Shown here: piece by piece, positions 5,596-63,208 of the stretch
How positions within the stretch are numbered: the stretch's first letter is position 1
Layout: each line of letters begins with the position of its first letter
Sequence record: LR756502.1
DNA length: 64,000 nt
Reading direction: 5' to 3' (one strand)
The notes under the pieces: model-generated
Seen by the model: only the letters and a program-made list of their open reading frames with translations
Databases searched by the model: none
Told to the model about the DNA's origin: nothing
Made by a program: the position numbers and the translations under genes

Positions 5596-5657
5596 TTATC
5601 CGTATATTTGTAAAACAGAAATTAAACTATTTAATAATATAATATATAATAATCGAA

Positions 5658-5765
5658 ATGAAAACTTTGCACACATATAAAAACGTGATTGACTGGATGT
5701 AAATATCCCGGCTACATAATTATATGTATTCCCAGTCAATAAAAATTGACTGGGATTTTTATTTT
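5658..5765 (+). promoter_or_regulatory. Attenuator 3: leader MKTLHTYKNVIDWM (5658-5702) + terminator (5729-5765)
   Basis: ATTGACTGG (5688-5696) is the exact complement of terminator arm CCAGTCAAT (5732-5740); operon contains RNA ligases and HisRS core. Confidence 0.65.
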
Positions 5766-5789
5766 AAAAAAATATAAAAATGTAAAGTT

Positions 5790-5987
5790 ATGAAAACTAA
5801 AGATATAGCTTGGTATGACCAGAAGTTGGAGAGTATCAAGAAAAGAAAAAGAAAGGTCTACCTTATTGATGATTCTAAAACTAGAAAGAGAATTAAGGCA
5901 GATCTTAAAAGAGAACAGCGTGGTGCTAAGCGAAGCGTTCGTAACTCTCTAAAAGAGTGGATTAAAAAAGAAATTAATACAGATTAA
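5790..5987 (+). CDS. Small very basic hypothetical protein
   Basis: Lys/Arg-rich 65 aa ORF. Confidence 0.6.
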   Translation: MKTKDIAWYDQKLESIKKRKRKVYLIDDSKTRKRIKADLKREQRGAKRSVRNSLKEWIKKEINTD

Positions 5988-5988
5988 G

Positions 5989-6186
5989 ATGGCAACACAT
6001 ACAAATACACTAACCTCACATCATGGTGAGAGTAGAACATCTAGAGCAGATAAAATGTCTGGTTGGATATCAGAATATAAAAGAATATTTGGTAAATCGG
6101 GAACATCGATGAAAACTGCCAAGACAATAAGTAATAGGAAAAGAAGAATGTTCTTAAAGAACAAAAAAAATTGGACAAAATTATGA
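5989..6186 (+). CDS. Small basic hypothetical protein
   Basis: 65 aa ORF, overlaps next gene. Confidence 0.55.
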   Translation: MATHTNTLTSHHGESRTSRADKMSGWISEYKRIFGKSGTSMKTAKTISNRKRRMFLKNKKNWTKL

Positions 6187-6836
6187 AATCATACCCGAGT
6201 ATAGACTATTTTGATAAAGGACTGTTTGGTGATACTGTTTGGGTATTCGACAAATTGGATGGATCAAATCTTAGAATGGAGTGGAACCGTAAGAGAGGGT
6301 GGTATAAATTTGGAACAAAGTCTGTAATGATTGATGTTAGTAATCCAGATTTTGGAGAAGCTATTCCTATATTTATGGAGAAATATTCCGATGATTTAGA
6401 GAGAGTATTTAAGAAAGAATATTCCAATGTTGAAAGCATTGTTGTTTTCTGTGAGTTTGTTGGAGACAACTCATTCGCTGGTCAGCATCTTGCTTCAGAT
6501 AAGAAGGATGTAGTTCTTTTTGATGTTAATCTTTATAAGAAAGGATTTATACATCCAAAAGATTTCCTCGATAACTTCGGACATCTCCATATACCCAAGT
6601 TGGTATATAAAGGAGAATATAATGACGACCTTATCAAAGATGTTAGAGATAATATCTGGGGTCTAAAAGAAGGTGTAATATGTAAAGGAGTTAGAAAAAC
6701 AAAAGGTGACCACATAGTCTGGATGACTAAGATTAAAACCATCGAATGGTTAAATAAAGTAAAAGAAAAATATGGAGAGAAGGCTCTCCTTGAAGAATTA
6801 AACAATAATAAAAAACTATTAAATTATGGAAATTAA
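6171..6836 (+). CDS. RNA ligase-like nucleotidyltransferase (Rnl2-type core)
   Basis: Motif I KLDGSN, CEFVG, LFDV, EGVICK, KIK. Confidence 0.75.
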   Translation: MDKIMKSYPSIDYFDKGLFGDTVWVFDKLDGSNLRMEWNRKRGWYKFGTKSVMIDVSNPDFGEAIPIFMEKYSDDLERVFKKEYSNVESIVVFCEFVGDNSFAGQHLASDKKDVVLFDVNLYKKGFIHPKDFLDNFGHLHIPKLVYKGEYNDDLIKDVRDNIWGLKEGVICKGVRKTKGDHIVWMTKIKTIEWLNKVKEKYGEKALLEELNNNKKLLNYGN

Positions 6837-7458
6837 ATTAGAATCAACGTATAAAGGAACTCGAATATTATTCGCTGAATCAGCTAAAAGAAAAAGAGAT
6901 ATATTAAATAAGATGATTGAAGTTCTTGAGTCCTATGGGTATCAGGAAATTATGATTCCTATTATTCAAAAACAAGAAACATTCCAATCAAAGGTGGGTG
7001 CTGAAAATCAAAACATGATGTTTAACTTCAAAGATAGAGGTGATCGTGATTTATGTTTATCCCCAGAGTATACCGCAATCGTTCAACAACTTGCTAAAGA
7101 GAAATTCAAATTCACAAACAATGTGAAGATGTTTTATATCGGTGAGTGTTTTAGAGGAGAAAATACACAAGCTGGAAGATGGAGACAATTTACTCAGTTT
7201 GGTGTTGAGATTATAAACCCAACAAAGGACTATTCTGATGAGATGGTTGAAATTGCTGGAAAACTAATTGAGTTAGTTACAAAAAATTATGAGACAAACC
7301 TAGATGCAACTCGTGGACTTGACTACTATAAAGGTGGTAAAGGATTTGAAATAGCTTGTCCAGAATTAGGTTCATCAAAGCAAGTTTGTGGCGGTGGTAC
7401 TTATGAAGGTGGTTTGGGATTCGCAGTGGGTGTTGATAGACTACTATTATGCAAATAA
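6826..7458 (+). CDS. hisS: Histidyl-tRNA synthetase catalytic core only (210 aa)
   Basis: LSPEYTA, motif 2 FRGENTQAGRWRQFTQFGVE, GLDYY, motif 3 GFAVGVDRL; no anticodon-binding domain. Confidence 0.8.
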   Translation: MEIKLESTYKGTRILFAESAKRKRDILNKMIEVLESYGYQEIMIPIIQKQETFQSKVGAENQNMMFNFKDRGDRDLCLSPEYTAIVQQLAKEKFKFTNNVKMFYIGECFRGENTQAGRWRQFTQFGVEIINPTKDYSDEMVEIAGKLIELVTKNYETNLDATRGLDYYKGGKGFEIACPELGSSKQVCGGGTYEGGLGFAVGVDRLLLCK

Positions 7459-7721
7459 GAGAAATAAAAATATCACTCCAGCAAAAGGACGGATATCTCT
7501 ACTTCAGAACTGGATCAGATCCAGTTGAAGTTGAAGTGAAGATAGAATTTGGCACTGCTAAAAATCTGAGGGATTTTTTACATAGTGGTGAAAAACTATG
7601 CAGTGTAGATAAAAATCTTGTGAAGATAATAAAAATTAATAAAATGAGACATACCTCTGTTGAGGCAACAATACAAAAAATTACTCTAAGAGAGTATAAT
7701 TTAGAAAGGTTACTATTATGA
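7449..7721 (+). CDS. Hypothetical protein with C-terminal tag (LREYNLERLLL)
   Basis: ORF track. Confidence 0.55.
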   Translation: MQIREIKISLQQKDGYLYFRTGSDPVEVEVKIEFGTAKNLRDFLHSGEKLCSVDKNLVKIIKINKMRHTSVEATIQKITLREYNLERLLL

Positions 7722-8431
7722 ACACAAAGAAAAGATTAAAGAATTTAAGAAATATCGCACCTGACTATCCGAGGATACCTCATTTAGACAAGTCTATATC
7801 AAATATGACACATGATGATATTCAACTTGAGTTACCGATTCAATTCCCATTTACTTGTTGGGTACAGGAGAAGATAGATGGCGCAAACATTGGTGTCTCT
7901 TGGACAAGCGGTCCACTTATTAGAAATAGAAACAACATTCTTAAAAAGGGATATATTGAGAAGGAAACTCCAGCTAAACTTCAGTTTAGACCGGCTTGGA
8001 ATTGGATACATGAGCATGGAAAAGAGATTAGAGATATCTCCAAAGAGATTATGTCACCTATAACAATATATGGTGAGTGGATGATAGCTAAGCATTCAAT
8101 TGAATATAATAAGCTAAGTGATTGGTTTATTGCATATGATATTTATTCTGCTGAGGATGGAAGATTCTTCGCTCCTGATATTGTTGATAGTATCTTATCA
8201 AAAACAAGTATTAAATATATCAAACCAAGTAAAGTCACCTTTGATAATATTGACGAAATTGTTGAGTACTCTGAGAGAAAATCAGAATATAGAGATGGCG
8301 TTAGAGAGGGTATTGTTATTAAGGTATCAGATGGTAGATTCGTTGGTCAATCATTTAAGGTGGTAAATAGACACTTTGTTCGTAGAGAGGACTTCAATAC
8401 CATTGATATAATTAAGAATAAATTATCCTAG
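7718..8431 (+). CDS. Second RNA ligase-like protein
   Basis: YPRIPHL, QEKIDGANIG, IYGEW, FIAYDI, EGIVIK, FKVV. Confidence 0.75.
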   Translation: MNTKKRLKNLRNIAPDYPRIPHLDKSISNMTHDDIQLELPIQFPFTCWVQEKIDGANIGVSWTSGPLIRNRNNILKKGYIEKETPAKLQFRPAWNWIHEHGKEIRDISKEIMSPITIYGEWMIAKHSIEYNKLSDWFIAYDIYSAEDGRFFAPDIVDSILSKTSIKYIKPSKVTFDNIDEIVEYSERKSEYRDGVREGIVIKVSDGRFVGQSFKVVNRHFVRREDFNTIDIIKNKLS

Positions 8432-16570: not shown

Positions 16571-16675
16571 TGCGGGGTAGGGAAGTGGTCATCCCGAGAC
16601 GCTCGTTTTTGATTCTTAAATGATGAAGAAGTGAGATAACGTTTAGATCGTTGGTTCGAATCCAACCCATCGCTA
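16571..16675 (+). tRNA. Initiator-Met-like tRNA interrupted by a 31-nt insert in the anticodon loop
   Basis: AGACG-CTC[31 nt]ATAA-CGTTT; intact D- and T-arms; U1:U72 mismatch. Confidence 0.65.
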
Positions 16676-16834
16676 CAAGAAGGAAGTATTGAAACCCATT
16701 AAAAAGAGAATATACAGACGGGGATCTTTTGAAATTCAGTACTTCTGAAGAATTATAAAAAGTTTACAAAAAATTTGGTGAGGTTAAAAAGTCACCTTAT
16801 CTTTGTAAAAGAAAATTAGAAATAAAAGATATAT

Positions 16835-16909
16835 TGCGGAGGGGTGAAACGGAATTCATGTAAGTCTCATAAACTTTTTCGATAATTGGTTCGACTCCAA
16901 TCTCCGCTA
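16835..16909 (+). tRNA. tRNA-Met(CAU), initiator-like (1:72 mismatch)
   Basis: AAGT-CTCATAA-ACTT, TGCGGAG/CTCCGCT. Confidence 0.8.
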
Positions 16910-16947
16910 CAAAAGAATAAAAACAAAATATTAATAAATTAGAAATA

Positions 16948-17100
16948 ATGAATAGATTTACTAACATAGAAACAATAGGGTACACAGGGTATGAGGGCGC
17001 GTATAGCGAACTTTTAGTCAGACCTTTGTCTATGTTATAATGTAAAATATTATACAATTTGATAAAATCCAGTCTGATTAATTTCAGACTGGATTTTTTG
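16948..17100 (+). promoter_or_regulatory. Attenuator 4: leader MNRFTNIETIGYTGYEGAYSELLVRPLSML (16948-17040) + terminator (17064-17100)
   Basis: Tyr x3, Glu x3; TAGTCAGAC (17015-17023) pairs with GTCTGATTA (17072-17080); followed by Glu/Tyr tRNAs. Confidence 0.8.
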
Positions 17101-17160
17101 TGTTTAAAGTTCTTTGAAGATTGAAATTTGGGAGTATAACGTTCCCACCAAAACCAATAT

Positions 17161-17245
17161 GCTACGGTATGCAAATTGGACTAAGCGCCCAGACTTTCAA
17201 TCTGGTCACGAAAGTGGATTGCGGGTTCGAATCCCGTCCGTAGTA
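17161..17245 (+). tRNA. tRNA with Glu(UUC) anticodon, Leu-like body and variable arm
   Basis: CCAGA-CTTTCAA-TCTGG; V-arm CAC-GAAA-GTG. Confidence 0.8.
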
Positions 17246-17259
17246 CAAATATAAAGCAC

Positions 17260-17343
17260 GGGAGTGCGCCAACGTTGGAGAGTTGGGCTAGTCTGTAAAA
17301 CTAGTGGCTTATGCCTGAGTGAGTTCGATTCTCACCACTCCCA
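17260..17343 (+). tRNA. tRNA-Tyr(GUA)
   Basis: CTAGT-CTGTAAA-ACTAG, V-arm. Confidence 0.85.
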
Positions 17344-17354
17344 CAAAGACAGAA

Positions 17355-17426
17355 GGTCCTGTCGACTAAAGGTTAGGTCAACACCCTTTCAAGGTGTAGA
17401 TACGGGTTCGATCCCCGTCAGGATCA
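17355..17426 (+). tRNA. tRNA-Glu(UUC)
   Basis: ACACC-CTTTCAA-GGTGT. Confidence 0.9.
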
Positions 17427-17431
17427 CAAAT

Positions 17432-17513
17432 GGGTCGTTAGCAAAGCGGCAAAGTCGAGGGACTGTAAATCCCTTCCCTTCGGGGTTCGTAGGTTCGAGT
17501 CCTACACGGCCCA
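17432..17513 (+). tRNA. tRNA-Tyr(GUA)
   Basis: AGGGA-CTGTAAA-TCCCT, V-arm. Confidence 0.9.
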
Positions 17514-17522
17514 CTAAAATAT

Positions 17523-17596
17523 GTTCCTATCGACTACGTTGGTTAGGTCACCTGCTTCTCAGGCAGGAGAACTCGGATCGTCACCGAGTGGGAATA
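17523..17596 (+). tRNA. tRNA-Glu(CUC)
   Basis: CCTGC-TTCTCAG-GCAGG. Confidence 0.85.
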
Positions 17597-17655
17597 CAAA
17601 AAATAAAAAGAGAGATTAAACTTTTAATATATACAATTATATAAAACAAGAAACT

Positions 17656-17797
17656 ATGAAAAATTTACATAACATATCAGTTGGAGTTATAGCGATAGGC
17701 GCGGGGAGCGTTTGTCTGTGGCTGAACTATGTTTCGTAAATAGTAAAATATTTATCATAAACTAACCCAGTCACAAAATGACTGGGTTTTTTATTTA
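17656..17797 (+). promoter_or_regulatory. Attenuator 5: leader MKNLHNISVGVIAIGAGSVCLWLNYVS (17656-17739) + terminator (17764-17797)
   Basis: Ile ATA x3, Gly x3, Ala x2; TGTGGCTG (17717-17724) pairs with CAGTCACA (17768-17775); followed by Ile(UAU)/Gly/Ala tRNAs. Confidence 0.8.
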
Positions 17798-18177: not shown

Positions 18178-18804
18178 ATGTATCATACAATTTATAAAAT
18201 AACAAATATACTAAATGATAAAATTTATATAGGCAAACACTCAACAGAAAATTTAGACGATAGTTATATGGGGTCTGGTTCTTATATTAGAAGATCCATA
18301 AAAAAATATGGAGTTGAGAATTTTAAGAAAGAGATTTTGTTTATATTTGATAGCTCAGAAGAGGCATATAAAAAAGAAATAGAAATTGTTAATGAAGACT
18401 TTGTATTAAGAACAGACACTTATAATATTATAACTGGAGGTGATTCATTTGAGGCAATTAACTCTAATGAAGAACTTAGAAAGGAAAAAAATAAAAGGGC
18501 AGCAGTATCAATGAATAGAATTAATTGGACAAATCCTGAGTTTATAAAAAGAAACCATGATAGAATGTCTGAACAAAATAAGAGATTATTTAATGAGGGA
18601 ATACTTAAAGCACCTGATTGGACAGGTAGAAAACACAAGGATGAAACCAAAATTAAACAAAGTATTTCAGCTAAAAAAAGAATTAGAGAGAAAAATAAAC
18701 ATTGTTGGGTATATCATTACGTAGATGGTAATAAAAAAATAAAAATATCCGAAATAGATACATATCTAATCAATGGATGGATAAAGGGAAGAATAATGAA
18801 ATGA
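18178..18804 (+). CDS. GIY-YIG (Seg-like) homing endonuclease inside the tRNA array
   Basis: IYKITN..KIYIGKHST..YMGSG; NUMOD3-like GRKHKDETK; true start ATG 18178. Confidence 0.9.
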   Translation: MYHTIYKITNILNDKIYIGKHSTENLDDSYMGSGSYIRRSIKKYGVENFKKEILFIFDSSEEAYKKEIEIVNEDFVLRTDTYNIITGGDSFEAINSNEELRKEKNKRAAVSMNRINWTNPEFIKRNHDRMSEQNKRLFNEGILKAPDWTGRKHKDETKIKQSISAKKRIREKNKHCWVYHYVDGNKKIKISEIDTYLINGWIKGRIMK

Positions 18805-29157: not shown

Positions 29158-29327
29158 ATGAAAACAATGAATTTAAATATGAATCTAAACACACTGACAG
29201 TGGTGAATAATACGTTATGTATTAGACCTTGTGAGGGTTTTGATCTATTTAATGATTTGTAGTATGGCATAAACATTAATAAAGGATAATCAAAACCCTC
29301 AGTCAAAAACTGAGGGTTTTTTGTTTT
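29158..29327 (+). promoter_or_regulatory. Attenuator 6: leader MKTMNLNMNLNTLTVVNNTLCIRPCEGFDLFNDL (29158-29262) + terminator (29292-29327)
   Basis: Asn x7, Leu x6, Thr x4, Val x2; TGAGGGTTTTGAT (29232-29244) is the exact complement of ATCAAAACCCTCA (29289-29301). Confidence 0.85.
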
Positions 29328-30959: not shown

Positions 30960-31394
30960 ATGGTAAAATATGACAAAGAGGAATTTATAAGTGTTTGTGA
31001 GGACAGTCCTACAATGGCTAGAGCGGCTTCTAAATTAGGTATTCATTTTAATACCTTTAGAAGGATAGCTGTTAAGTTGAATTGTTATAGAACAAATCAG
31101 TCCGGAAAGGGTTTAACTAAAAAGAGCGATAGAGGAACACCTTTGTCAGAAATTCTTGAGGGAAAACATCCACAATTTCAATCATTTAAATTGAAAAATA
31201 AATTGATAAAGGAAGGAATAAAAGAGAATAGATGTGAGGTTTGTAATATAAGTGAATGGAATGGGAAAGTGATAAATTGTGAACTAGACCATATAGATGG
31301 TAATAGCAGAAATCACAGATTGGAAAATCTAAGAATACTGTGTCCAAATTGTCACTCACAAACTGATACATTTAGAGCAAAGAATATAAAATAA
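30960..31394 (+). CDS. HNH endonuclease inside the tRNA array
   Basis: CEVC..ELDHIDGNSRNHRLENLRILCPNCH. Confidence 0.9.
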   Translation: MVKYDKEEFISVCEDSPTMARAASKLGIHFNTFRRIAVKLNCYRTNQSGKGLTKKSDRGTPLSEILEGKHPQFQSFKLKNKLIKEGIKENRCEVCNISEWNGKVINCELDHIDGNSRNHRLENLRILCPNCHSQTDTFRAKNIK

Positions 31395-43687: not shown

Positions 43688-46384
43688 ATGTTAAAAAGAA
43701 TATTTCTAAGTTGTGCAATCCTCCTCTTGTCTTTGTATACAAAGGCTCAAATGGTAGGAACCGACGCATATATACAAGGTACTAGCGTTGAAATTGGTAT
43801 TAATGGATTAGGTGGATATGAGGGAGTTAACCAAACTACATCACCACCTCCAGCGGGATATCATGCTCGTGGTACATTTCTACCATTTGGATTTATTGCA
43901 AATCCCCAGGTAAATTCTTGGGCTACTTATGATGGTGACTTTTTTACTCCTGGTAGTCCAGAGAATGGTTGGGGATTCCAAATTGGGTCAACAACCGGAT
44001 CCGCTAACTCTAGAGGTAATAATTGTGCTGGTTTGCAACAAATTAATGGTAGTTTTACAAACTGGTCTCATAACTTCAACTGTTATAATGCTACATGGGA
44101 AGGAGATTACACTTCGGCAACAGACATTCACTTTACTATAAGTTATGATCTTGTTCAGACTGATTTATTTTACACAACAACTGTTTCTATAACAAATAAT
44201 ACTACTGCTACTATTCCAGATTTATATTACTATAGAAATGTTGACCCTGATAATAATGAGGAGATAAGTGGTACCTTTACAACAACACAAACAATAGTAA
44301 GTCAACCAGCTTCTGGTTGTAACCTAGCACACGTTCAGGCCACATCACCAACACCTTGGAACTCGTATCTTGGGTTTGCTGCTATTGGTGCTAATTGGAG
44401 AGCAGACTATGGTGGATTTAGTAATAGAGCCGCTGCTGATTTATGGACTGGTCTTGGATTTACACAAACTGTTGGTGCCACAAATACCGCAGATGAGGGA
44501 ATATCACTAGCATATAGAATACAAAATCTTGCTCCAGGTGCTACAGAAACATTTAAATTTGTGGTTATTTTAGACCCATCATCAGCTACGGCAGCAATTA
44601 ACAACCTACTTTACTTATCATATCCAGGTTCATTAACAGCTCCGCCATCTGTTTGTACACCTTATGCCGATACAATTAGAACATGTGGTGGACCAGTTCC
44701 TATTAACATTGCCGGACCTATTGTTGGTGATTTTAGCTGGACGTGGACACCAACTACTGGTTTAACACCAATTACTGGACCATCTGTTAGTGCTAACCCT
44801 AGTGTAACAACAACATATACCGCAGTTGGTACACCTTTAAGCGCTTGTGTAACACCGGTTTCACTAACATTTGTTGTTTTAATAACTCCGGGTGGTGGAA
44901 CCGCACCTTATATAACACCAGTTGCTCCAGTATGTATCACGACACCACCTTTTAATTTTGTGGCTGATACTCTTGGTGGAGTATGGAGTGGAACAGGAAT
45001 TAGTCCTACAGGAACCTTTAATCCCGCAACTGCTGGAGCTGGTACGTATTTAATAACATATACGACAACCAATACTTGTAATCCTATAGATACAACATAT
45101 ATTACAGTAAGTGGTTCAGACCCTACAATAACTACACATATTCCTGTTTGTGCAGGTTCCTCACCTTATACTTTAACTGCCGCATCTACTGGTGGTGTAT
45201 GGAGTGGTGGTGGAATTAGTCCTACAGGAGTTTTTACACCTAGTACTGCCGGTACTTTTGTTATAACATACACACTTTCAGGGTTGTGTGCAGCAACAGA
45301 TACCGTAACATTAGTTGTAAACCCAACCGTACCACCGATAACAGGTATTTCATACATCACACCTGTATGTATAAGTGGTACTAACCCAACACCAATACCT
45401 GTATCAGGATTCACTGTCGGTGGTGTATATAGTTCAACACCAGGATTATCTTTGAATACTGGAACTGGAGTTGTAAATTTAGCGGGTAGTACACCTGGTA
45501 CATATACAATAACATATTCTTATGCAGCAACTGTTTGTGGACCGGCAGGTTCAAGTAGTACAACTTTAGTTATAACTCCACTAATAGTGCCAGTTTTAGG
45601 ATTCTCATATAATAGTGTTTGTGTTGATGGTGTTGATCCATCCCCTATCACAGTTGCTGGATTTACAACCGGTGGTGTTTACTCATGTCCTGGTTTATCA
45701 ATAAACCCAGCAACTGGAGTAATAGACTTATCATCTAGTTCACCTGGTACATATACTGTTACATATACTGTTACAGGATCATCTGTTCTATGTACCTCTG
45801 GTGGTACTAGTACATCTACTATAACTATTAAACCACTTCCGGTTATAATTATATCTTCTGATCAAACAATATTTCTTGGTCAAAGTACGCTTATATTTGC
45901 TAGTGGTGGAACAATATATAATTGGAGTCCCTCACAAGGGTTGAATACAACTACTAATGATAGTGCTATTGCTTCACCAGTTGTAACAACAACATATTGT
46001 GTTGGTGTTTCTAGTTTAGGTTGTATTGATACAATGTGTGTTAAAGTTAATGTTGAAATTCCTTGTCCAAGTAATAGAAATATGGGAGTACCAAATGCAT
46101 TTACTCCAAATGGTGATGGTAATAATGATCAACTATGTTTAGATGGTTGGGATGATTGTATCTCAAACTTTGAAATAAGAATATTTGACCGTTGGGGTGA
46201 GAAAGTATTTGAATCTAAAAATCCTGGCTTTTGTTGGGATGGTGTGTATAAGGGTAAGCCTTTAGATCCAGCTGTCTTTGTTTACTACATTACTGCATCA
46301 TATAATGTTGATGGTGTTTTACCAACATCACAGACAAGTACTACTAAGGTTAATAAAACAGGAAATATCTCATTGATTAGATAA
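43688..46384 (+). CDS. Secreted Thr/Gly/Pro-rich surface protein with T9SS type B (gliding-motility-associated) C-terminal domain
   Basis: Signal peptide; repeated Ig/PKD-like units (GGVWSG.GI...G.F.P); VPNAFTPNGDG.ND..IFDRWGEKVFES..WDG.YKG. Confidence 0.88.
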   Translation: MLKRIFLSCAILLLSLYTKAQMVGTDAYIQGTSVEIGINGLGGYEGVNQTTSPPPAGYHARGTFLPFGFIANPQVNSWATYDGDFFTPGSPENGWGFQIGSTTGSANSRGNNCAGLQQINGSFTNWSHNFNCYNATWEGDYTSATDIHFTISYDLVQTDLFYTTTVSITNNTTATIPDLYYYRNVDPDNNEEISGTFTTTQTIVSQPASGCNLAHVQATSPTPWNSYLGFAAIGANWRADYGGFSNRAAADLWTGLGFTQTVGATNTADEGISLAYRIQNLAPGATETFKFVVILDPSSATAAINNLLYLSYPGSLTAPPSVCTPYADTIRTCGGPVPINIAGPIVGDFSWTWTPTTGLTPITGPSVSANPSVTTTYTAVGTPLSACVTPVSLTFVVLITPGGGTAPYITPVAPVCITTPPFNFVADTLGGVWSGTGISPTGTFNPATAGAGTYLITYTTTNTCNPIDTTYITVSGSDPTITTHIPVCAGSSPYTLTAASTGGVWSGGGISPTGVFTPSTAGTFVITYTLSGLCAATDTVTLVVNPTVPPITGISYITPVCISGTNPTPIPVSGFTVGGVYSSTPGLSLNTGTGVVNLAGSTPGTYTITYSYAATVCGPAGSSSTTLVITPLIVPVLGFSYNSVCVDGVDPSPITVAGFTTGGVYSCPGLSINPATGVIDLSSSSPGTYTVTYTVTGSSVLCTSGGTSTSTITIKPLPVIIISSDQTIFLGQSTLIFASGGTIYNWSPSQGLNTTTNDSAIASPVVTTTYCVGVSSLGCIDTMCVKVNVEIPCPSNRNMGVPNAFTPNGDGNNDQLCLDGWDDCISNFEIRIFDRWGEKVFESKNPGFCWDGVYKGKPLDPAVFVYYITASYNVDGVLPTSQTSTTKVNKTGNISLIR

Positions 46385-46410
46385 ATCTACTAATTTTACT
46401 TATATTTAAA

Positions 46411-46564
46411 CCCTCGGATAAAAATTCGAGGGTTTTTGTTTAAAAGAATTAATATATAACCTATGAGACACATGAAAAAATTTAATGCCCTCGGATAAAA
46501 ATTCGAGGGTTTTTGTTTAAAAGAATTAATATATAACCTATGAGACACATGAAAAAATTTAATG
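46411..46564 (+). repeat. Perfect 77-bp tandem duplication (terminator + TAATATATA + MRHMKKFN start)
   Basis: 46411-46487 identical to 46488-46564. Confidence 0.9.
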
Positions 46565-49860: not shown

Positions 49861-49957
49861 AATTAAAATTAATTTGGTAAATTGAAAACTTCTTCCTATA
49901 TTTGTAATAGAATTAAAAATAACAAAAACACGCTTTAAAAAGCTGATATATACTAAA

Positions 49958-50119
49958 ATGAAAAACTTAATCTTAAATATCGCAATTCAAGTACAACGTC
50001 AAGTTGTTGTCGATCAGGATCAACCGGATACGACTGAGGCTAATTGCGATTTTATAAGAGAGTAAAATAATACTTGAATTATACAAACCCAGTTAGTCTA
50101 TGATTAACTGGGTTTTTTT
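49958..50119 (+). promoter_or_regulatory. Attenuator 7: leader MKNLILNIAIQVQRQVVVDQDQPDTTEANCDL (49958-50056) + terminator (50085-50119)
   Basis: Asp x4, Gln x5, Pro; GGCTAATTG (50038-50046) pairs with CAGTTAGTC (50090-50098); followed by Pro/Asp tRNAs. Confidence 0.75.
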
Positions 50120-50130
50120 ATTGCTTAAAA

Positions 50131-50203
50131 CGCGAAGTGACTGAGGTTTAAGCGAGAGTGGTCTGGAGCCATTTTTTAGTCAGTTCGATTCTGACCTTCG
50201 CGA
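50131..50203 (+). tRNA. Atypical tRNA-Pro(UGG), C33/A37
   Basis: C1:G72, A73; AGTGG-TCTGGAG-CCATT. Confidence 0.65.
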
Positions 50204-50211
50204 CAAAATTA

Positions 50212-50286
50212 CGGAAATTGGGCTAATTGGTAAGCCGCTTCATTTGGGATGAAGACATCGTGTGGGTTCAAGTCCCGCATTTCCGA
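50212..50286 (+). tRNA. tRNA-Pro(UGG)
   Basis: CTTCA-TTTGGGA-TGAAG. Confidence 0.9.
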
Positions 50287-50291
50287 CAAAT

Positions 50292-50366
50292 GGCTCGTGG
50301 TACTGCACGGTGTGGTAACCTGTTTGTCAAACAGGATACAGATGGGATCATTACCCATACGAGTCA
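50292..50366 (+). tRNA. tRNA-Asp(GUC)
   Basis: CCTGT-TTGTCAA-ACAGG; unusual D-arm, A73. Confidence 0.8.
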
Positions 50367-50371
50367 CAAAA

Positions 50372-50443
50372 GGTCTATTAGTGAAATGGCTATCATCCCA
50401 CACTGTCACTGTGGAGTAGACGGATCGAAACCGTCATAGACCG
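50372..50443 (+). tRNA. tRNA-Asp(GUC)
   Basis: CCACA-CTGTCAC-TGTGG, G73. Confidence 0.9.
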
Positions 50444-50508
50444 CAAGAGATTAATTTGGAATCTTAAACCTTGCAAAAGCGAGGACTGGTAATATTTTAA
50501 TCTCATAT

Positions 50509-50583
50509 GGTTCGTGGAACTGCACGGTGTGGTTACTTGATTGTCAATCAGGACACAGACGGGATCGTTACCCGTACGAATCA
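50509..50583 (+). tRNA. tRNA-Asp(GUC), paralogue of 50292
   Basis: CTTGA-TTGTCAA-TCAGG. Confidence 0.8.
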
Positions 50584-50588
50584 CAAAA

Positions 50589-50662
50589 CGAGAAGTGACT
50601 AAGGCTTTAAGCACGGGTGATCAGGAGTCATCTGTTAGTGGGTTCAATTCCAACCTTCTCGA
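50589..50662 (+). tRNA. Atypical tRNA-Pro(AGG), C33/A37
   Basis: C1:G72, A73; GGTGA-TCAGGAG-TCATC. Confidence 0.65.
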
Positions 50663-50670
50663 CAAATATA

Positions 50671-50744
50671 AAGATGTTGATCGTCTAATGAAAGGTTCCC
50701 CTACGGAGGGGAGGGTTTGGGTTTGATTCCCAAGAGACGTTTTT
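50671..50744 (+). pseudogene. Degenerate tRNA-Arg(ACG)
   Basis: TCCC-CTACGGA-GGGA and T-arm; weak acceptor. Confidence 0.5.
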
Positions 50745-50752
50745 ATGTTAAC

Positions 50753-50822
50753 GGTGCTGTCGTCTAATGATAGGATGCTCCCATTGGAGGGAGTGATGTA
50801 GGTTTGATTCCTAACTGTACCG
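50753..50822 (+). pseudogene. tRNA-like gene with 6-nt anticodon loop (ATTGGA)
   Basis: CTCCC-ATTGGA-GGGAG; D- and T-arms present. Confidence 0.5.
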
Positions 50823-50833
50823 CAAAAATAATA

Positions 50834-50902
50834 CGAGATGTAGCCTATTGGCATGAGGCACTAGTTTTGTGAACTAGACGAAGCAGGTTCCTGTCATCTC
50901 GA
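50834..50902 (+). pseudogene. Pro-type body with UGU anticodon and deleted T-loop
   Basis: CGAGATG/CATCTCG; CTAGT-TTTGTGA-ACTAG; GCAGG-TT-CCTGT. Confidence 0.55.
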
Positions 50903-50936: not shown

Positions 50937-51052
50937 ATGACAACTTCATTTCAGCAACAACAGCAACAACAAATTAATCGAACAGATTGATGTGGAATGA
51001 TATTGTTTAAATATTACACCCGTTAGTCTGAGGAGATTAACGGGTTTTTTAT
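50937..51052 (+). promoter_or_regulatory. Attenuator 8: poly-Gln leader MTTSFQQQQQQQINRTD (50937-50990) + terminator (51018-51052)
   Basis: 7 consecutive CAG/CAA codons; CAGATTGATG (50983-50992) pairs with CGTTAGTCTG (51021-51030); followed by 4 tRNA-Gln and glnS. Confidence 0.9.
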
Positions 51053-51123
51053 TGTCCGATAGTGTAGAGGTAACACAAGGGTCTTTGGTCCCCTTATCAC
51101 TGGTTCGATCCCAGTTCGGATAA
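51053..51123 (+). tRNA. tRNA-Gln(UUG)
   Basis: U1:A72; CTTTGGT loop. Confidence 0.85.
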
Positions 51124-51130
51124 CAAATAT

Positions 51131-51214
51131 TGCGGAATCCCATAATGGCATTGGTCCTGACTTTGAATCAGGTGGAATGAAAATTCTGTGTAGGTTCGAA
51201 TCCTACTTCCGCAT
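51131..51214 (+). tRNA. tRNA-Gln(UUG) with long variable arm
   Basis: CCTGA-CTTTGAA-TCAGG; V-arm GGAAT-GAAA-ATTCT. Confidence 0.85.
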
Positions 51215-51219
51215 CAAAT

Positions 51220-51292
51220 TCCTCTTTGGTCTAATGGCTAATGACGTGTCCCTTTGACGGATAAGGTGGTGGTTCGATTCCATCAAGAGGAA
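51220..51292 (+). tRNA. tRNA-Gln(UUG)
   Basis: TGTCC-CTTTGAC-GGATA. Confidence 0.85.
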
Positions 51293-51297
51293 CAAAA

Positions 51298-51369
51298 TGT
51301 CTTATAATATAATGGTTAGTATAACCGCCTCTGAAGCGGTTTGTCTTGGTTCGAGTCCAGGTGAGACAA
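51298..51369 (+). tRNA. tRNA-Gln(CUG)
   Basis: ACCGC-CTCTGAA-GCGGT. Confidence 0.9.
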
Positions 51370-51397
51370 CTAAAAATTAATTTAAACTAAAACAATT

Positions 51398-52999
51398 ATG
51401 AATTTCATTGAAGATAAAATAATAGAGAAAAATAACTTAGATAAACTAAAGTTAAGATTTCCACCAGAAAACTCAGGTTATATCCACCTGGGTCATGCCA
51501 AATCTATCTGTCTTAATTTTGGACTAGCATTAAAATATAACAGACCTTGTAATTTAAGGTTTGATGATACTAACCCATCCAATGAATCTGACGATTTCAC
51601 AAGATCAATAATTGAAGATATCAAATGGTTAGGATTCACACCATCTGAGACTCTATATACCTCTGATTATTTCTCTGAACTATACAACTATGCAATCATC
51701 CTAATTAGAAAAGGATTAGCTTACGTTGATGATTCAACATCAGAAGAAATTGCCTTATTAAAAGGAACACCAACATCTGTTGGTAAAGATTCTCCATATA
51801 AATCAAGAACTATCGAAGAGAACTTAGACTTATTCAATAGAATGAAATTAGGTGAATTCACAGAGGGTTCTAAAACACTTAGAGCAAACATTGATATGAC
51901 TTCATCTAATATGATATTGAGAGATCCTATCATATATAGAATGATTAATAAGACACACCACAATGTTGGTGATGCTTGGAAGATATATCCAATGTATGAT
52001 TTTGCACATCCATTGTCTGACTATATTGAAGGTATAACTGACTCTTTGTGTACTATGGAATTTGAGGTACATTTGCCTTTATATATGTGGGTATTGAAAA
52101 ATTGTGATTTAAAAAATTCTTTACCGGAAGAAACTGAGTTTGCTCGATTGAACATTGATTTTACAATAATGAGTAAGAGAAAACTAAAGAGATTAGTTGA
52201 AGAAGGATTTGTTTCTGGATGGGATGATCCAAGAATGCCTACTATCTCTGGATTAAGAAGAAGAGGATTTACACCAAAAAGTATTAGAGATTTTTGTGAA
52301 GAAATTTCTGTAACAAGAAGTAACTCTATAATTAGTCATAAAGTATTAGAAGAGTGTTTAAGAACAGATTTGAATAAGTCAGCTAATAGAATGATGGGTG
52401 TTATTGACCCTGTTAAATTGACTATTACTAATTGGGTTGGTGGTACTGAATGGGTTGAAATAGAGAATAACCCAGAAGATCCAAACGCTGGAACTAGATT
52501 GGTTCCTTTTACTGGAGTGTTGTGGATTGAGATAGAAGACTTTAGATTAGAAGCTGATAAGAAATTTCACAGATTAAAGTTGAATGAAGAAGTTAGATTA
52601 AAAGGTGGATACGTTGTTAAAGCAACCGATGTTGTTATGAATGGTGATGTTATATCTGAGATAAAATGTACATTCGATCCTAACTCTAAATCTGGAATGG
52701 TTTTAGATAGAAAGGTAAAAGGAGTAATTCACTGGGTATCTGTTGAACACGCTGTTAACTTAGATGTTAATGAGTATGATACTTTATTTACTGAATCTAA
52801 TCCTGATGATTTAGAAGATTTTACAACTTGTATTAATCCTAATTCTTTAATTGTGAATACAAAGGCTATGTTTGAACCACATATAATGGCACTTGAAGTT
52901 GGTGTTCCGGTTCAAATGATGAGAAAAGGATATTATTGTCTTGACAAGGATGGTGTTTTTAACAAGACCGTTTCATTGAAAGAAGGTTGGAAAGGATAA
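51398..52999 (+). CDS. glnS: Glutaminyl-tRNA synthetase
   Basis: RFPPENSGYIHLGHAK, LRFDDTNP, YPMYDFAH, SKRKL, GWDDPRMPTI.GLRRRG, VKGVIHWVS. Confidence 0.95.
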   Translation: MNFIEDKIIEKNNLDKLKLRFPPENSGYIHLGHAKSICLNFGLALKYNRPCNLRFDDTNPSNESDDFTRSIIEDIKWLGFTPSETLYTSDYFSELYNYAIILIRKGLAYVDDSTSEEIALLKGTPTSVGKDSPYKSRTIEENLDLFNRMKLGEFTEGSKTLRANIDMTSSNMILRDPIIYRMINKTHHNVGDAWKIYPMYDFAHPLSDYIEGITDSLCTMEFEVHLPLYMWVLKNCDLKNSLPEETEFARLNIDFTIMSKRKLKRLVEEGFVSGWDDPRMPTISGLRRRGFTPKSIRDFCEEISVTRSNSIISHKVLEECLRTDLNKSANRMMGVIDPVKLTITNWVGGTEWVEIENNPEDPNAGTRLVPFTGVLWIEIEDFRLEADKKFHRLKLNEEVRLKGGYVVKATDVVMNGDVISEIKCTFDPNSKSGMVLDRKVKGVIHWVSVEHAVNLDVNEYDTLFTESNPDDLEDFTTCINPNSLIVNTKAMFEPHIMALEVGVPVQMMRKGYYCLDKDGVFNKTVSLKEGWKG

Positions 53000-54161: not shown

Positions 54162-54213
54162 AAAAAAAATAAATAAATTAGAACAAATCAAAAAATTTAT
54201 ATATATTTGTAGA

Positions 54214-54338
54214 ATGAGAAAGATAATTAAATTAAAAGATGATCGTTATTTATGGACTGACTGCCTCGCAGATTAGTGATAGATAACTATTACCTATAAT
54301 CTTCAAACCCAGTCAGAAATGACTGGGTTTTTTATTTT
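54214..54338 (+). promoter_or_regulatory. Attenuator 9: leader MRKIIKLKDDRYLWTDCLAD (54214-54276) + terminator (54305-54338)
   Basis: Asp x4; CTGACTG (54257-54263) pairs with CAGTCAG (54310-54316); directly before aspS. Confidence 0.8.
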
Positions 54339-54362
54339 AAACAAAAATTAAAAAAATATATT

Positions 54363-55640
54363 ATGAAAAGAATAAACGTAAATCAATTAGAAAACTTTAT
54401 CGGTCAAACTGTACTGGTAAAAGGATGGGTATCTCAATTTAGAGAACTTAAAAAAATGTCTTTCCTTATTTTAAGAGAAAGAACTGGATATTGTCAAATC
54501 ATTATCCCAAAAGAAATTAGTGAATCACTTTCACCTGAGTCTGTTGTCGAGGTTATCGGAACAGTTAAAGTAGAAAGTCAATCTCGTTATGGTGGTTATG
54601 AAATTGTAGCTGAGTCAGTTAAAGTAACATCAGTTGCCCAACTACTTCCTTTTCCTATAAACAGAGAAGAAGGTATTCCCGCTTTCAACACATTAAACAT
54701 ATTTAGACCTTTAACATTAAGAAAGGAAAAAGAAAGATGTATATTCAAAATTCAATCTGAGATTATCTGGGCTTATAGAGAATATTTAAGAAGTCAAGGG
54801 TTTACTGAAATACAATCTACTAAAATGTCTGCAGCTGGATTAGAAGGTGGATCAGAAATGTTTGAGATAGAATACTTTGGTCAAAAAATGTATTTAACTC
54901 AATCACCACAGTTTTATAAACAAATGATGGTTGGTGTTTATGAAAGAGTATTTGAAGTTGGTAAAGTTTACCGTGCTGAAGGTTCTAACTCCAACAAACA
55001 CTTAACCGAGTTTGTTGGTTTTGAATTCGAAATGGGATTCATTGAATCTGTTGAAGAAGTTATGCAAATGGAAGAAAATGTATTTGAGTATATCTTTACT
55101 CACTTAACATCTGTTTGTGAGAAAGAATTGGGATATTTAGAAGTAGAACTTAAATTTAATCCTATTCCAAGAGTAACTTACGCTGAGGTGATTGAGATTA
55201 TAAAAAATGAATATGGAATTACTTATGAGAAAGTAGGATTAAATACTGAAGCTGAAAGATTAATTTCTGAGTATATCTTTAGTAAGACTGGTTCTGAATT
55301 TGTTTTCATTACAAAATATCCACTTTCAGAAAGACCGTTCTATGCAATGCCTTCTGTTGAAGAAGGATGTTCAGAGACATTTGAATTGTTATATAAGGGA
55401 ATGGAGATTACTTCTGGTGGTCAACGTATTCATAACTATGAAGAATTAGTAAAATCAATTGAGTCTAAGGGATTAAACCCAGAAGCTTTTGAAAGTTACT
55501 TAATGGCTTTTAAGTTTGGAATGCCAACACATGGTGGTATGGGTATTGGATTAGAAAGAGTTGTTAAACAGATGTTAAATTTATCATCAGCTGAAGAAGC
55601 TTCTTTAATTCCAAGAACAAAAGAGAAGTGGATACACTAA
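54363..55640 (+). CDS. aspS: Aspartyl-tRNA synthetase, short archaeal/non-discriminating type
   Basis: OB-fold N-terminus, LTQSPQFYKQ, YRAE..HLTEF, EITSGGQRIH, PTHGGMGIGLER; no GAD insertion. AsnRS not fully excluded. Confidence 0.85.
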   Translation: MKRINVNQLENFIGQTVLVKGWVSQFRELKKMSFLILRERTGYCQIIIPKEISESLSPESVVEVIGTVKVESQSRYGGYEIVAESVKVTSVAQLLPFPINREEGIPAFNTLNIFRPLTLRKEKERCIFKIQSEIIWAYREYLRSQGFTEIQSTKMSAAGLEGGSEMFEIEYFGQKMYLTQSPQFYKQMMVGVYERVFEVGKVYRAEGSNSNKHLTEFVGFEFEMGFIESVEEVMQMEENVFEYIFTHLTSVCEKELGYLEVELKFNPIPRVTYAEVIEIIKNEYGITYEKVGLNTEAERLISEYIFSKTGSEFVFITKYPLSERPFYAMPSVEEGCSETFELLYKGMEITSGGQRIHNYEELVKSIESKGLNPEAFESYLMAFKFGMPTHGGMGIGLERVVKQMLNLSSAEEASLIPRTKEKWIH

Positions 55641-62038: not shown

Positions 62039-62154
62039 GGCCTTTTCGTCTAGTGGTTCTTCCTTGTGAAGATACATTGATAGTCTTTGACTTCCAGTGT
62101 AAGGACGGGTGTCTTTTCAGACACAGAACAGCGGTTCGACCCCGTTAAAGGCTA
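62039..62154 (+). tRNA. tRNA-Glu-type gene with 43-nt D-loop insert and 8-nt anticodon loop
   Basis: Same body as 63101; insert 62059-62101; GTGT-CTTTTCAG-ACAC. Confidence 0.7.
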
Positions 62155-62159
62155 CAATT

Positions 62160-63098
62160 AAAAAGTCTACCCCTTCGTCCTCGATGGGTAATATCCAAAT
62201 AAAGACGCAAATAGGATGTTTCAGACTTTGTACCAAGCTTCGACTTCGGTTGTTGTGTAGGTAGGGCGGCTTATAGTCCTTAAATAAACCTCGAAAGGGG
62301 GATAAAGTGAGTATCATTGCTAAATGATATTTGCGGTTTGAACTGAAAGGTTTGAGCTCGAGTAAGCAAGCGAAATACCACAAAATCTGTAGTAATGAGG
62401 GTAACTCCGTAGTGAAACGATTTTGTGATTGGGTGAACGTAGGTCACTTGATTGACTTCGGAAGAAGAACAGGAATAATTCGTAGGAATTTTGTGAGAAA
62501 TATCGGCTTAACCGGCTAGTATGATTGCGAGTTCTAATTCAAGAGATGTCTTAAAGTTGAAAGACAATTCTTCTACCAGGTGGTGCTGTTGAAGAACATT
62601 AATCTGACTACCAAGTTGGTAGGTATCATCGCAAGGTGGTATCGTGATGAAGAAATCTTAAAGAATTGTGATGGAGGCATCACACAGAGTAGTTCAGTAT
62701 TTTGTCTGTCAAAAACGGATGAAGCTGAGAGGAGACCACTACTTTGACTTAATCTACAAGCACAAAAAATTTACTTATGATGTAAAAACTATAACTAAAT
62801 CAAAAGTGTTTCCTAGTTATCAATGAAAATTGACTACTTAGCCGTGAGTTGTTCACGGTCACATTAAGCCCGAAAGGCGGATGTGATTTCAGAGAAAAGC
62901 TTATAGAGGGTCGAACCTCTAATCAGTTCGCAAGACTGAATAAGTGGAGTAAATGGAGAATAGTTGATAACTTAAGGAGTGGTTGGTCTAACTAACCGTC
63001 ATTGACAAGTTACTACTCAAAAGGTAGTGGATAGATTTGGGAATAAATAATCCAAACAGAGGCTTGTTGTTTTAGGATGTAATCTCAGTCCTTTTTTT
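62160..63098 (+). ncRNA. Large (~0.9 kb) structured ncRNA, GOLLD/ROOL-class candidate
   Basis: No credible ORF, higher GC, many hairpins (CCTC-GAAA-GGGG, GAG-GGTAA-CTC, TATCATC-GCAA-GGTGGTA, GTGATG/CATCAC, CCGTGA/TCACGG, AGAGG/CCTCT), flanked by tRNAs, ends in U-tract. Family not verified. Confidence 0.7.
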
Positions 63099-63100
63099 AT

Positions 63101-63173
63101 GGCCTTTTCGTCTAGTGGTTAGGACGAATATCTTTTCAGATATTAAACAGCGGTTCGAATCCGTTAAAGGCTA
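63101..63173 (+). tRNA. tRNA-Glu-type gene with 8-nt anticodon loop
   Basis: GGCCTTT/AAAGGCT; AATAT-CTTTTCAG-ATATT. Confidence 0.75.
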
Positions 63174-63177
63174 CAAC

Positions 63178-63208
63178 AACCCACCGATCTGGTGGGTTTT
63201 TTTATTTT
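63178..63208 (+). terminator. Intrinsic terminator
   Basis: AACCCACC-GATCT-GGTGGGTT followed by T-tract. Confidence 0.85.

Follow-up and report, generated by a model that had tools for sequence, protein, structure and literature searches.

A predicted codon-sensing attenuator upstream of tRNA genes in a huge phage

The reasons why phages carry tRNA genes, and the moment at which they use them, are an old question that is usually answered by correlating codon usage. A locus in a 642-kb phage bears on it: a promoter is followed there by a 35-codon mini-gene containing Asp, Gln and Pro codons, then by a terminator with an alternative hairpin, and immediately afterwards by a block of Pro and Asp tRNA genes. 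We asked whether this arrangement may constitute a sensor by which the phage switches on its own tRNAs when ribosomes stall for want of them. The analysis was centered on a stretch of 64,000 nucleotides of record LR756502.1, hereafter the window, for which a first-pass annotation had proposed a leader-peptide attenuator sensing Asp, Pro and Gln ahead of the Pro and Asp tRNA genes. That interpretation is supported by the sequence-level evidence presented below, although no experiment exists.

The elements of the locus lie in the order expected for an attenuator (Table 1). The promoter assignment rests on the -33/-7 consensus that Bacteroidota sigma-A promoters appear to follow; the exact -7 sequence TATATTTGTA occurs 14 times on the + strand of the window and once on the - strand, and the copies that were mapped lie just upstream of leader ORFs or gene starts. 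The leader ORF starts about 50 nt after the -7 box, its stop codon is at 50063, the terminator begins 19 nt after the stop codon and only 16 nt separate it from the first tRNA gene. In several sister leaders and orthologues the AT-rich motif upstream of the ORF is the one found before many ordinary start codons, while this copy has only a weak version (ATATATA). The 9-bp antiterminator strand indicated by the first-pass annotation is real: AGGCTAATTG, corresponding to codons 27-30, pairs with CAGTTAGTCT in the 5' arm of the terminator over 10 bp, two of which are G-U, and starts 10-13 nt after the Pro and last Asp codons. The leader region folds better than shuffled sequences (z = -4.46), and when the RNA is truncated at the terminator loop the minimum-energy fold is the antiterminator. 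The three Asp genes and two of the three Pro genes listed in the first-pass annotation were found by ARAGORN, whereas the third Pro gene (AGG) appeared only at a relaxed threshold. The annotation had also described several genes of the cluster as decaying, but this is an interpretation which is not established, and the Pro(AGG)-like gene has a 91% identical orthologue in a diverged genome.

Table 1. Coordinates of the Pro/Asp locus and of related units in the window (all on the + strand).
Position	Feature	Details
49873-49906	Promoter of Bacteroidota type	TTTG (49873-76), 20 nt, TATATTTGTA (49897-49906)
49958-50065	Leader ORF, 35 codons	MKNLILNIAIQVQRQVVVDQDQPDTTEANCDFIRE; ATG AAA A.. start also found in 10 related phage loci
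49979-49987	Region 1, possible anti-antiterminator	ATCGCAATT; pairs with 50042-50050 (AATTGCGAT) over 9 bp in the minimum-free-energy fold
49988-50029	Sensing codons	Q-V-Q-R-Q (49988-50002); D-Q-D-Q-P-D, codons 19-24 (50012-50029)
50037-50046	Region 2, 5' strand of the antiterminator	AGGCTAATTG
50085-50119	Intrinsic terminator, 14 pairs	5' arm 50085-50098 (includes region 3, 50090-50099, CAGTTAGTCT); 3' arm 50102-50115; T-run 50113-50119
50131-50584	Pro(TGG) x2, Asp(GTC) x3 tRNA genes	Pro 50131-50204, 50212-50287; Asp 50292-50367, 50372-50444, 50509-50584; only 50212 and 50372 score as canonical tRNAs in Rfam
50589-50902	Four aberrant tRNA-like genes	Pro(AGG)-like 50589-50663 (20.7 bits in Rfam); 50672-50745 (not detected by Rfam); 50753-50822 (33.6 bits, 6-nt anticodon loop); 50834-50902 (44.1 bits, collapsed T-loop)
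50937-51051	Second attenuator in series, no promoter of its own	Leader MTTSFQQQQQQQINRTD (50937-50990); region 2 at 50983-50992, overlapping the stop codon; terminator 51018-51045
51053-52999	tRNA-Gln x4 and glutaminyl-tRNA synthetase	tRNAs 51053-51370; synthetase 51398-52999 (TIGR00440 glnS, 618 bits)
54202-55640	Asp attenuator before AspRS	Promoter at 54202; leader MRKIIKLKDDRYLWTDCLAD (54214-54276); terminator about 54305-54336; aspartate-tRNA(Asn) ligase 54363-55640 (NF003483, 469 bits against a cutoff of 353)
930-1079	Phe/His(/Lys/Trp) unit	Leader 930-1016; terminator 1050-1079; before Phe, His, Phe and Trp-like tRNAs; Lys mini-leader 1590-1619
3420-3547	Ser/Arg unit	Leader (..SSRSRSSKS..) 3420-3494; terminator 3518-3547; before Arg and Ser tRNAs
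16948-17788	Glu/Tyr and Ile/Gly/Ala units in series	Leader 16948-17040, terminator 17064-17097; leader 17656-17739, terminator 17764-17788; Ile codons ATA x3, tRNA Ile(TAT)
29158-29320	Asn/Leu/Thr/Val unit	Leader 29158-29262; terminator 29292-29320; before Asn, Leu, Val, Ile, Thr and Met tRNAs

Taken on its own, this leader is the weakest of the window. It has a single Pro codon, Pro and Asp together account for 5 of 34 residues, and with these two amino acids alone it cannot be distinguished from random small ORFs. When Gln is included, a run of six residues within {D,P,Q} occurs in 2 of the 637 small ORFs of the window, and the Gln codons are 5 against 0.7 expected (P = 7e-4). Ten orthologues in related huge phages, located next to GlnRS genes of 64-74% amino acid identity to that of the window, keep the ORF, PQPQ and DQDP(D) codons at the corresponding positions and the terminator ahead of Asp/Pro tRNAs, and the Pro codons differ synonymously between close relatives (CCG/CCT). 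The core 8 bp of the antiterminator is paired in 10 of 10 homologues, including the locus L004, where both strands differ, and the terminator hairpin is kept through compensatory changes in L004 and in a further locus, L009. Covariation in the antiterminator is nevertheless modest, because both strands are highly conserved (37 of 500 shuffles reach the observed score), and in L009 the antiterminator overlaps the altered terminator only marginally. RNAalifold on the ten Pro/Asp leaders recovered only the terminator; since the MAFFT alignment misplaces the altered terminators of L004 and L009, the antiterminator was tested on motif-anchored blocks and with duplex energies against shuffles. The hairpin between regions 1 and 2 of the classical four-region model, strong in the copy of the window, is not supported in the orthologues (p 0.08-0.68).

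The window holds eight or nine units of this design. Each of eight leaders is rich in the amino acids of its own tRNA block, and the true pairing of leaders and blocks is the unique maximum of 40,320 permutations, with a mean cognate fraction of 0.36 against 0.127 +/- 0.043. In all nine units, the best complement to the 5' arm of the terminator lies in the leader ORF, before or across the stop codon; it is 3' of the sensing codons in eight units and overlaps the last of them in the Phe/His unit (Fisher P = 1.6e-7). The Lys mini-leader is followed by a hairpin without a U-tract and is not counted as a confirmed attenuator. Among the Gln attenuators, pairing of region 2 with region 3 was found in 11 of 11, and in one of them, L005, a different terminator is accompanied by a correspondingly different region 2, the two being still complementary (-15.2 against -6.8 kcal/mol). 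Moreover, the downstream enzyme was guessed from the leader before being identified, and in the five cases tested the guess held: an IIII leader was followed by IleRS (674 bits), NNRN by AsnRS, LLL by a LeuRS-like gene, VVVV by a ValRS-like gene and a D-rich leader by AspRS. Leader composition could thus serve as an annotation rule.

Such units were absent from the control sequences. No cognate leader was found in 669 kb of cellular-type contigs with 25 tRNA genes, no poly-Q leader plus terminator in 71 cellular-type glnS loci, and neither tRNA genes nor such units in 100 kb flanking the window in the same genome. The cellular-type loci derived from a metagenome scan with the GlnRS alignment, which mostly returned glnS at about 50% identity and a single phage relative, L017. 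A tblastn search of IleRS against the phage collection gave only LR745206 plus bacterial-like records, and hence no view of wider distribution.

In light of these results, the locus is probably a ribosome-mediated transcription attenuator whose regulated genes are the phage's own tRNA genes, although translation of the leader, stalling, read-through and feedback are inferred from sequence without experimental or transcriptome evidence, for an uncultured phage whose host is only predicted (Bacteroidetes; PMC7162821), with tight transcription-translation coupling in the host assumed. In this model, a ribosome translates the leader while RNA polymerase moves on. If Asp-, Pro- or Gln-tRNA is scarce, the ribosome stalls at the sensing codons and region 2 stays free to pair with region 3 as soon as that is made, so that the terminator cannot form and polymerase reads into the Pro and Asp tRNA genes and on to the next gate. 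If decoding is fast, the ribosome runs over region 2 to the stop codon, the terminator forms and transcription ends before the first tRNA. As the output relieves the stall, the circuit would act as a negative-feedback supply controller. The Gln codons fit the serial layout: the Gln tRNAs and GlnRS lie behind a second, poly-Gln attenuator lacking a promoter of its own, and on this model the first gate must also open on Gln demand. There is no promoter or terminator between the Pro/Asp tRNAs and the Gln leader in the window or in four relatives. However, this reading is not backed by every relative: L017 has promoter-like boxes before its Gln leader yet keeps 5 Q, and the idea that loss of the serial arrangement predicts loss of Q codons was not borne out consistently, since it fits in the related locus L006 but not in L017 or L015. 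The analogous enrichment is significant only for Pro/Asp+Gln, being marginal for Phe/His+Lys (P = 0.06) and absent by count for Glu/Tyr+Ile/Gly.

Other explanations appear unlikely, but deserve consideration. The hairpin could be an ordinary terminator or insulator preceded by a fortuitous reading frame, with the tRNA genes expressed from an unrecognised phage promoter or by leaky read-through. Strong terminators are indeed common in the window, the Pro and Asp codons of this leader are not significant alone, and a second AT-rich motif of unknown role, TTTAATATATA, lies near many gene starts and could be a phage promoter. On the other hand, the promoter lies upstream of the terminator, which leaves so little space before the first tRNA, and the conservation of the ORF and its codons, the correspondence between leaders and tRNA blocks, the successful guesses of the synthetases and the absence of such units from flanking and control DNA all speak against a chance ORF. 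The same low credence is given to a general sensor of translation capacity, in which the leader would report overall ribosome speed or availability, as erm-type leaders report drug-stalled ribosomes. This particular leader mixes three amino acids and many others, and Pro and Asp codons may be intrinsically slow to decode, but amino acid specificity is the strongest signal in the data, with QQQQQQQ before the Gln tRNAs and GlnRS, IIII before IleRS, VVVV before ValRS-like and SSRSRSS before Ser and Arg tRNAs.

Slightly less remote, yet still unlikely, is a translation-independent switch, in which the conserved CTAACT/AGTTAG elements and the hairpin are read by an RNA-binding antiterminator protein, or directly by uncharged tRNA as in a T-box, the ORF being incidental or merely positioning the element. 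The strong sequence conservation of both antiterminator strands, with its weak covariation, leaves room for a protein site, the Pro/Asp and Gln terminators of the window share GTTAGTC...GATTAAC, and huge phages carry many unknown proteins. Nevertheless, Rfam detected no T-box or other riboregulator family in the window at gathering threshold, the leader RNA is only about 160 nt and is dominated by an ORF, the non-homologous units of the window have unrelated region 2 and 3 sequences but the same geometry and cognate codons, and L005 and L004 changed both strands while keeping the pairing. A protein or tRNA sensor would not need runs of cognate codons in frame after an ATG.

A broader reading, which remains tentative, is that the tRNA island of this phage is run by a decoding-homeostasis regulon, where at least nine amino-acid-specific, ribosome-stalling attenuators govern the roughly 45-58 tRNA genes called in the window and several aminoacyl-tRNA synthetase genes. 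Gates would be chained, so that an upstream leader integrates the demands of everything behind it (here Asp, Pro and Gln, then Gln alone), and the virus would measure, codon family by codon family, whether the infected cell can still decode, replacing only what is missing, for example after the host degrades its tRNAs or cleaves them with anticodon nucleases as a defence. The short, modular gates could also serve as sensors of decoding capacity.

No prior description of such an arrangement was found in a literature search that left out most subscription journals. The tRNA gene clusters of T4 and other large phages are likewise co-transcribed as arrays, with homing endonuclease genes inside, but within that search, which included the genome paper (PMC7162821), no codon-specific sensor was found described in front of them. 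T-box riboswitches before aaRS genes in Firmicutes share the regulatory logic, in that a shortage of charged cognate tRNA prevents a terminator from forming and raises the decoding supply, but a T-box binds uncharged tRNA directly through a specifier codon and the T-box sequence, without translation, while the sensor proposed here is a translated ORF. With the attenuators of enterobacterial biosynthesis operons (trpL, hisL, pheL, leuL, thrL, ilvL) the locus shares a promoter-proximal short ORF with regulatory codons, an intrinsic terminator, an antiterminator strand just 3' of those codons and a stop codon placed so that an unstalled ribosome blocks the antiterminator; it differs in that the regulated genes are tRNA genes and not biosynthetic enzymes, the element is viral, several amino acids appear to be sensed at once, gates are chained in series within one transcription unit and the hairpin between regions 1 and 2 is not supported in the orthologues. 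Leader-peptide attenuation would thus be extended to tRNA genes as a new class of target, to viruses and to a Bacteroidota setting. In the pheST attenuator of E. coli (pheM leader) and in the His-codon leaders before hisS paralogues in bacilli (PMC2965389), attenuation already controls a component of the decoding machinery with negative feedback through charged tRNA, and the phage's Asp, Ile, Val, Asn and Leu leaders before the matching synthetases are of this kind; in the window, however, the same device stands in front of tRNA genes themselves, and one unit, that for Gln, appears to drive both the tRNAs and their synthetase.

The window is identical to positions 372001-436000 of LR756502.1, an unannotated 642,428-bp genome of an uncultured phage, and the paper describing the 634-735-kb genomes places all of its largest genomes in the Mahaphage clade, with predicted Bacteroidetes hosts, and reports many tRNAs and tRNA synthetases, without any mention of attenuation, leaders or terminators (PMC7162821). 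Features of the window fit that host. The box TATATTTGTA, which appears to match the Bacteroidota -7 element TAnnTTTG, occurs 14 times exactly on the + strand, and the copies that were mapped lie just upstream of leader ORFs or gene starts, while one ORF carries a type IX secretion CHU_C domain and is followed by two nearly identical terminators in tandem. A second motif, TTTAATATATA, was matched 29 times with at most 1 mismatch against 13.9 expected, and lies a few to about 25 nt upstream of many start codons on both strands, including those of leader ORFs; it may represent a second promoter class or a translation-initiation signal. The window is a translation island, with 44 tRNA genes detected by ARAGORN (58 at a relaxed threshold), GlnRS, a GluRS-type enzyme, AspRS, a TrpRS-like fragment, two RNA ligases and a full-length GOLLD RNA (275 bits) located at the end of the tRNA island, whereas the 50 kb on either side contain no tRNA gene. 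Weak Pfam matches, all below the gathering thresholds, suggest the insertion of homing-endonuclease-like genes (GIY-YIG/SegE-like and HNH-like) inside tRNA blocks.

Coordinates of the features discussed in the text (positions in the window unless otherwise stated)
Feature	Position	Remarks
Promoter, TTTG box	49873-76	followed by 20 nt
Promoter, TATATTTG	49897-49904	
Asp/Pro/Gln leader ORF	49958-50065	MKNLILNIAIQVQRQVVVDQDQPDTTEANCDFIRE
1:2 helix	49979-87 with 50042-50	9 bp
Region 2 (antiterminator 5' strand)	50037-46	AGGCTAATTG
Region 3	50090-99	CAGTTAGTCT, inside the terminator's 5' arm
Terminator	50085-50115	14 pairs, run of seven T
Pro(TGG) x2 and Asp(GTC) x3		16 nt after the terminator
One Pro and two Asp genes not reaching E = 1 (Rfam)	50131, 50292, 50509	
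Pro(AGG)-like gene and three aberrant tRNA-like genes	up to 50902	
Gln leader	50937-50990	
Lys mini-leader and following hairpin	1590-1645	MKTKRKYKR, directly before three Lys tRNA genes
TrpRS-like ORF	2257-2976	239 aa, behind the Lys tRNAs
Attenuator-like unit not followed by tRNA genes	5603-8431	promoter box at 5603
Leader of that unit	5658-5702	MKTLHTYKNVIDWM
Complement to its terminator arm	5688-5696	9 bp, perfect
Terminator arm of that unit	5730-5755	
RNA ligases	6171-6836, 7718-8431	
HisRS-core-like ORF	6826-7458	210 aa, between the two RNA ligases
tRNA-like hit of 103 nt	16572-16674	
Promoter-like box	16798	TATCTTTGTA
tRNA-Met-like gene	16838-16910	region 16798-16948
Homing-endonuclease-like genes	18178-18804, 30960-31394	
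tRNA-like genes with unusual anticodon loop	18899-18971, 50753-50823, 62082-62155, 63101-63174	
The same, locus L003 (outside the window)	3244-3315	
The same, locus L098 (outside the window)	13836 and 1364	
CHU_C domain ORF	43688-46384	
Tandem terminators	46408-46435, 46487-46510	
GOLLD RNA	62685-63091	
tRNA-like genes flanking GOLLD	62039-62155, 63101-63174	
Terminator after GOLLD	63178-63198	
Motif TTTAATATATA, examples	912, 11490, 17623, 18153, 29139, 53016	

At the locus under study a promoter, a short ORF, a terminator and the Pro and Asp tRNA genes follow each other in this order. The antiterminator strand noticed in the first-pass annotation is real: region 2 pairs with region 3 and, when the RNA is truncated at the terminator loop, this helix is the minimum-energy fold. 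The observation is thus confirmed, while the claim that the cluster includes several decaying genes is not established. Several genes called by ARAGORN score indeed poorly in Rfam, and the two Asp genes that do not reach E = 1 share an unusual T-arm (GGGATCATTACCC / GGGATCGTTACCC), but the Pro(AGG)-like gene is 91% identical to its counterpart in a genome whose GlnRS is only 73% identical. Recurrent tRNA-like genes whose anticodon loop has 6 nt (reported by ARAGORN as '???' with a two-base anticodon), and one with 8 nt, were found in the window and in the loci L003 and L098; the gene at 63101-63174 is otherwise a good tRNA (52.8 bits), and these genes may be decay products or frameshift-type tRNAs.

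Taken alone, this leader is the weakest in the window, as P+D accounts for 5 of 34 residues, no better than random small ORFs. Including Gln changes the picture, since a run of six residues within {D,P,Q} occurs in 2 of 637 small ORFs, and Q is 5 against 0.7 expected (P = 7e-4). The decisive evidence is nonetheless comparative. GlnRS relatives and a terminator-pattern scan gave ten loci from related huge phages, including the 634-kb genome LR745206.1, each with a short ORF, a terminator and Asp/Pro tRNA genes in the same order. Their peptides include ...NPQPQVVIDQDPGSKEANYVVLG, ...NPQPQDQDPMRKANYVFMIS, ...QPQSQVVIDQEQDPDTIEANCVFM, ...NPQPKGLNDLDPDRIVTNCFVFMS and ...QVQPDPQVSSAGCMFHMS, where the Pro, Gln and Asp positions persist while other residues change, and close relatives differ by synonymous Pro codons. 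The window's copy has lost the two Pro codons of PQPQ (now VQRQ) and gained an extra DQ.

In 10 of 11 family members the best complement to the terminator's 5' arm lies at the homologous place, codons E/G/K-A/T-N-Y/C just after the sensing codons. On motif-anchored blocks, the core 8 bp of the antiterminator is a standard pair in 10 of 10 sequences, with wobble-compatible one-sided changes (G/A opposite U, U/C opposite G) and one two-sided change, while slid registers pair in at most 43% of cells. Covariation is modest (37 of 500 shuffles reach it) because both strands are conserved, and RNAalifold recovered only the terminator. The 1:2 helix of the window's copy has no significant counterpart elsewhere.

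The pattern is general, as every tRNA block in the window is preceded by a short ORF and a strong terminator, and each ORF is rich in the amino acids of the tRNAs behind it: MRTINKHKHFSKLNKWFSNHRFEAKAFC precedes Phe, His, Phe and Trp-like genes, then Lys; ..TSSRSRSSKS.. precedes Arg and Ser; ..IETIGYTGYEGAYSE.. precedes Glu and Tyr; ..ISVGVIAIGAGS.. precedes Ile(TAT), Gly and Ala, with all three Ile codons ATA; MKTMNLNMNLNTLTVVNNTL.. precedes Asn, Leu, Val, Ile, Thr and Met; and MTTSFQQQQQQQINRTD precedes four Gln tRNAs and GlnRS. The Lys mini-leader is followed by a 12-bp hairpin that lacks a U-tract, and that is therefore not a canonical terminator; the TrpRS-like protein encoded behind the Lys tRNAs is shortened and below the family cutoff. 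The tRNA-Met-like gene lying between a promoter-like box and the Glu/Tyr leader would be transcribed ahead of the gate, in the same RNA as the leader ORF, and a nearby tRNA-like hit of 103 nt may carry an insertion. Among all 40,320 ways of pairing eight leaders with eight tRNA sets, the true one is the unique maximum. In all nine units the segment most complementary to the terminator's 5' arm lies in the leader ORF; in seven of the eight measured units it starts 7-17 nt after the last sensing codon, while in the Phe/His unit it overlaps the last sensing codons. The stop codon lies 10-19 nt beyond it, or inside it for Gln, and the terminator begins 19-33 nt after the stop (Fisher P = 1.6e-7). 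This is the geometry of classical attenuation, where a ribosome stalled on the sensing codons abuts region 2 but leaves it free, and a ribosome that finishes the ORF covers it.

Some leaders are followed by protein genes rather than tRNA genes, and for these we predicted the enzyme from each leader before identifying it. MNFNTIIIIRYS.. precedes IleRS (TIGR00392, 674 bits), MKTMTINNRNRL.. precedes AsnRS, MINNNVNILLLPLT precedes a LeuRS-like gene, MKHINSNNVVVVNRN.. precedes a ValRS-like gene and, in the window, MRKIIKLKDDRYLWTDCLAD precedes aspartate-tRNA(Asn) ligase. The eleven Gln attenuators all show region 2 pairing with region 3, and the related locus L005 has a different terminator and a matching, different region 2. 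A further attenuator-like unit in the window is not followed by tRNA genes: its leader contains a perfect complement to the terminator arm (p = 0.002), and downstream of it lie small basic ORFs, two RNA ligases and a shortened HisRS-like ORF. This leader strings together His, Tyr, Lys, Asn and Asp codons and, if the corresponding tRNAs are typical targets of anticodon nucleases, it could speculatively act as a damage sensor for a tRNA-repair module.

Control sequences did not show the same arrangement. In 669 kb of cellular-type contigs with 25 tRNA genes, two had an upstream terminator and none a cognate leader; 71 cellular-type glnS loci lacked a poly-Gln leader with a terminator; and the 100 kb flanking the window has no such unit.

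The best-supported reading, in which we place fairly high confidence although translation, stalling, read-through and feedback are all inferred from sequence, is ribosome-mediated attenuation with tRNA genes as the output; the interpretation of the first-pass annotation, an Asp/Pro/Gln leader before Pro and Asp tRNAs, is supported at the level that sequence analysis can reach. In this reading, slow decoding of Asp, Pro or Gln codons keeps region 2 free, the antiterminator forms, and polymerase reads into the tRNA genes, while fast decoding lets the terminator form. Because the products speed up decoding of the sensor, the loop is self-limiting. The Gln codons are explained by the layout, as the Gln leader follows the last tRNA-like gene directly and no promoter box or terminator lies between the blocks in the window or in four relatives, so that Gln demand must open the first gate as well; in two relatives a Gln tRNA even sits in the Asp/Pro block. 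This serial-gate idea is supported for this unit, only marginally for Phe/His-Lys (P = 0.06), and not by count for Glu/Tyr-Ile/Gly. Relatives have ORFs inserted between the Asp/Pro and Gln blocks (loci L004, L006, L009, L015 and L017), and relatives with inserted genes and promoter-like boxes do not consistently lose Q.

No description of leader-peptide control of tRNA genes, or of such elements in large phages, was found in the full texts searched, although prior work in subscription journals cannot be excluded. The device works like trpL/hisL-type attenuators and, for the synthetase genes, like the pheST attenuator and the His-codon leaders before hisS paralogues (PMC2965389). In logic it resembles T-boxes, but it fails their defining features, and no T-box or other riboregulator was found by Rfam in the window. 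What is new, as far as the texts searched show, is the target, i.e., the tRNA genes themselves, together with the viral setting, the multi-amino-acid sensing and the chained gates.
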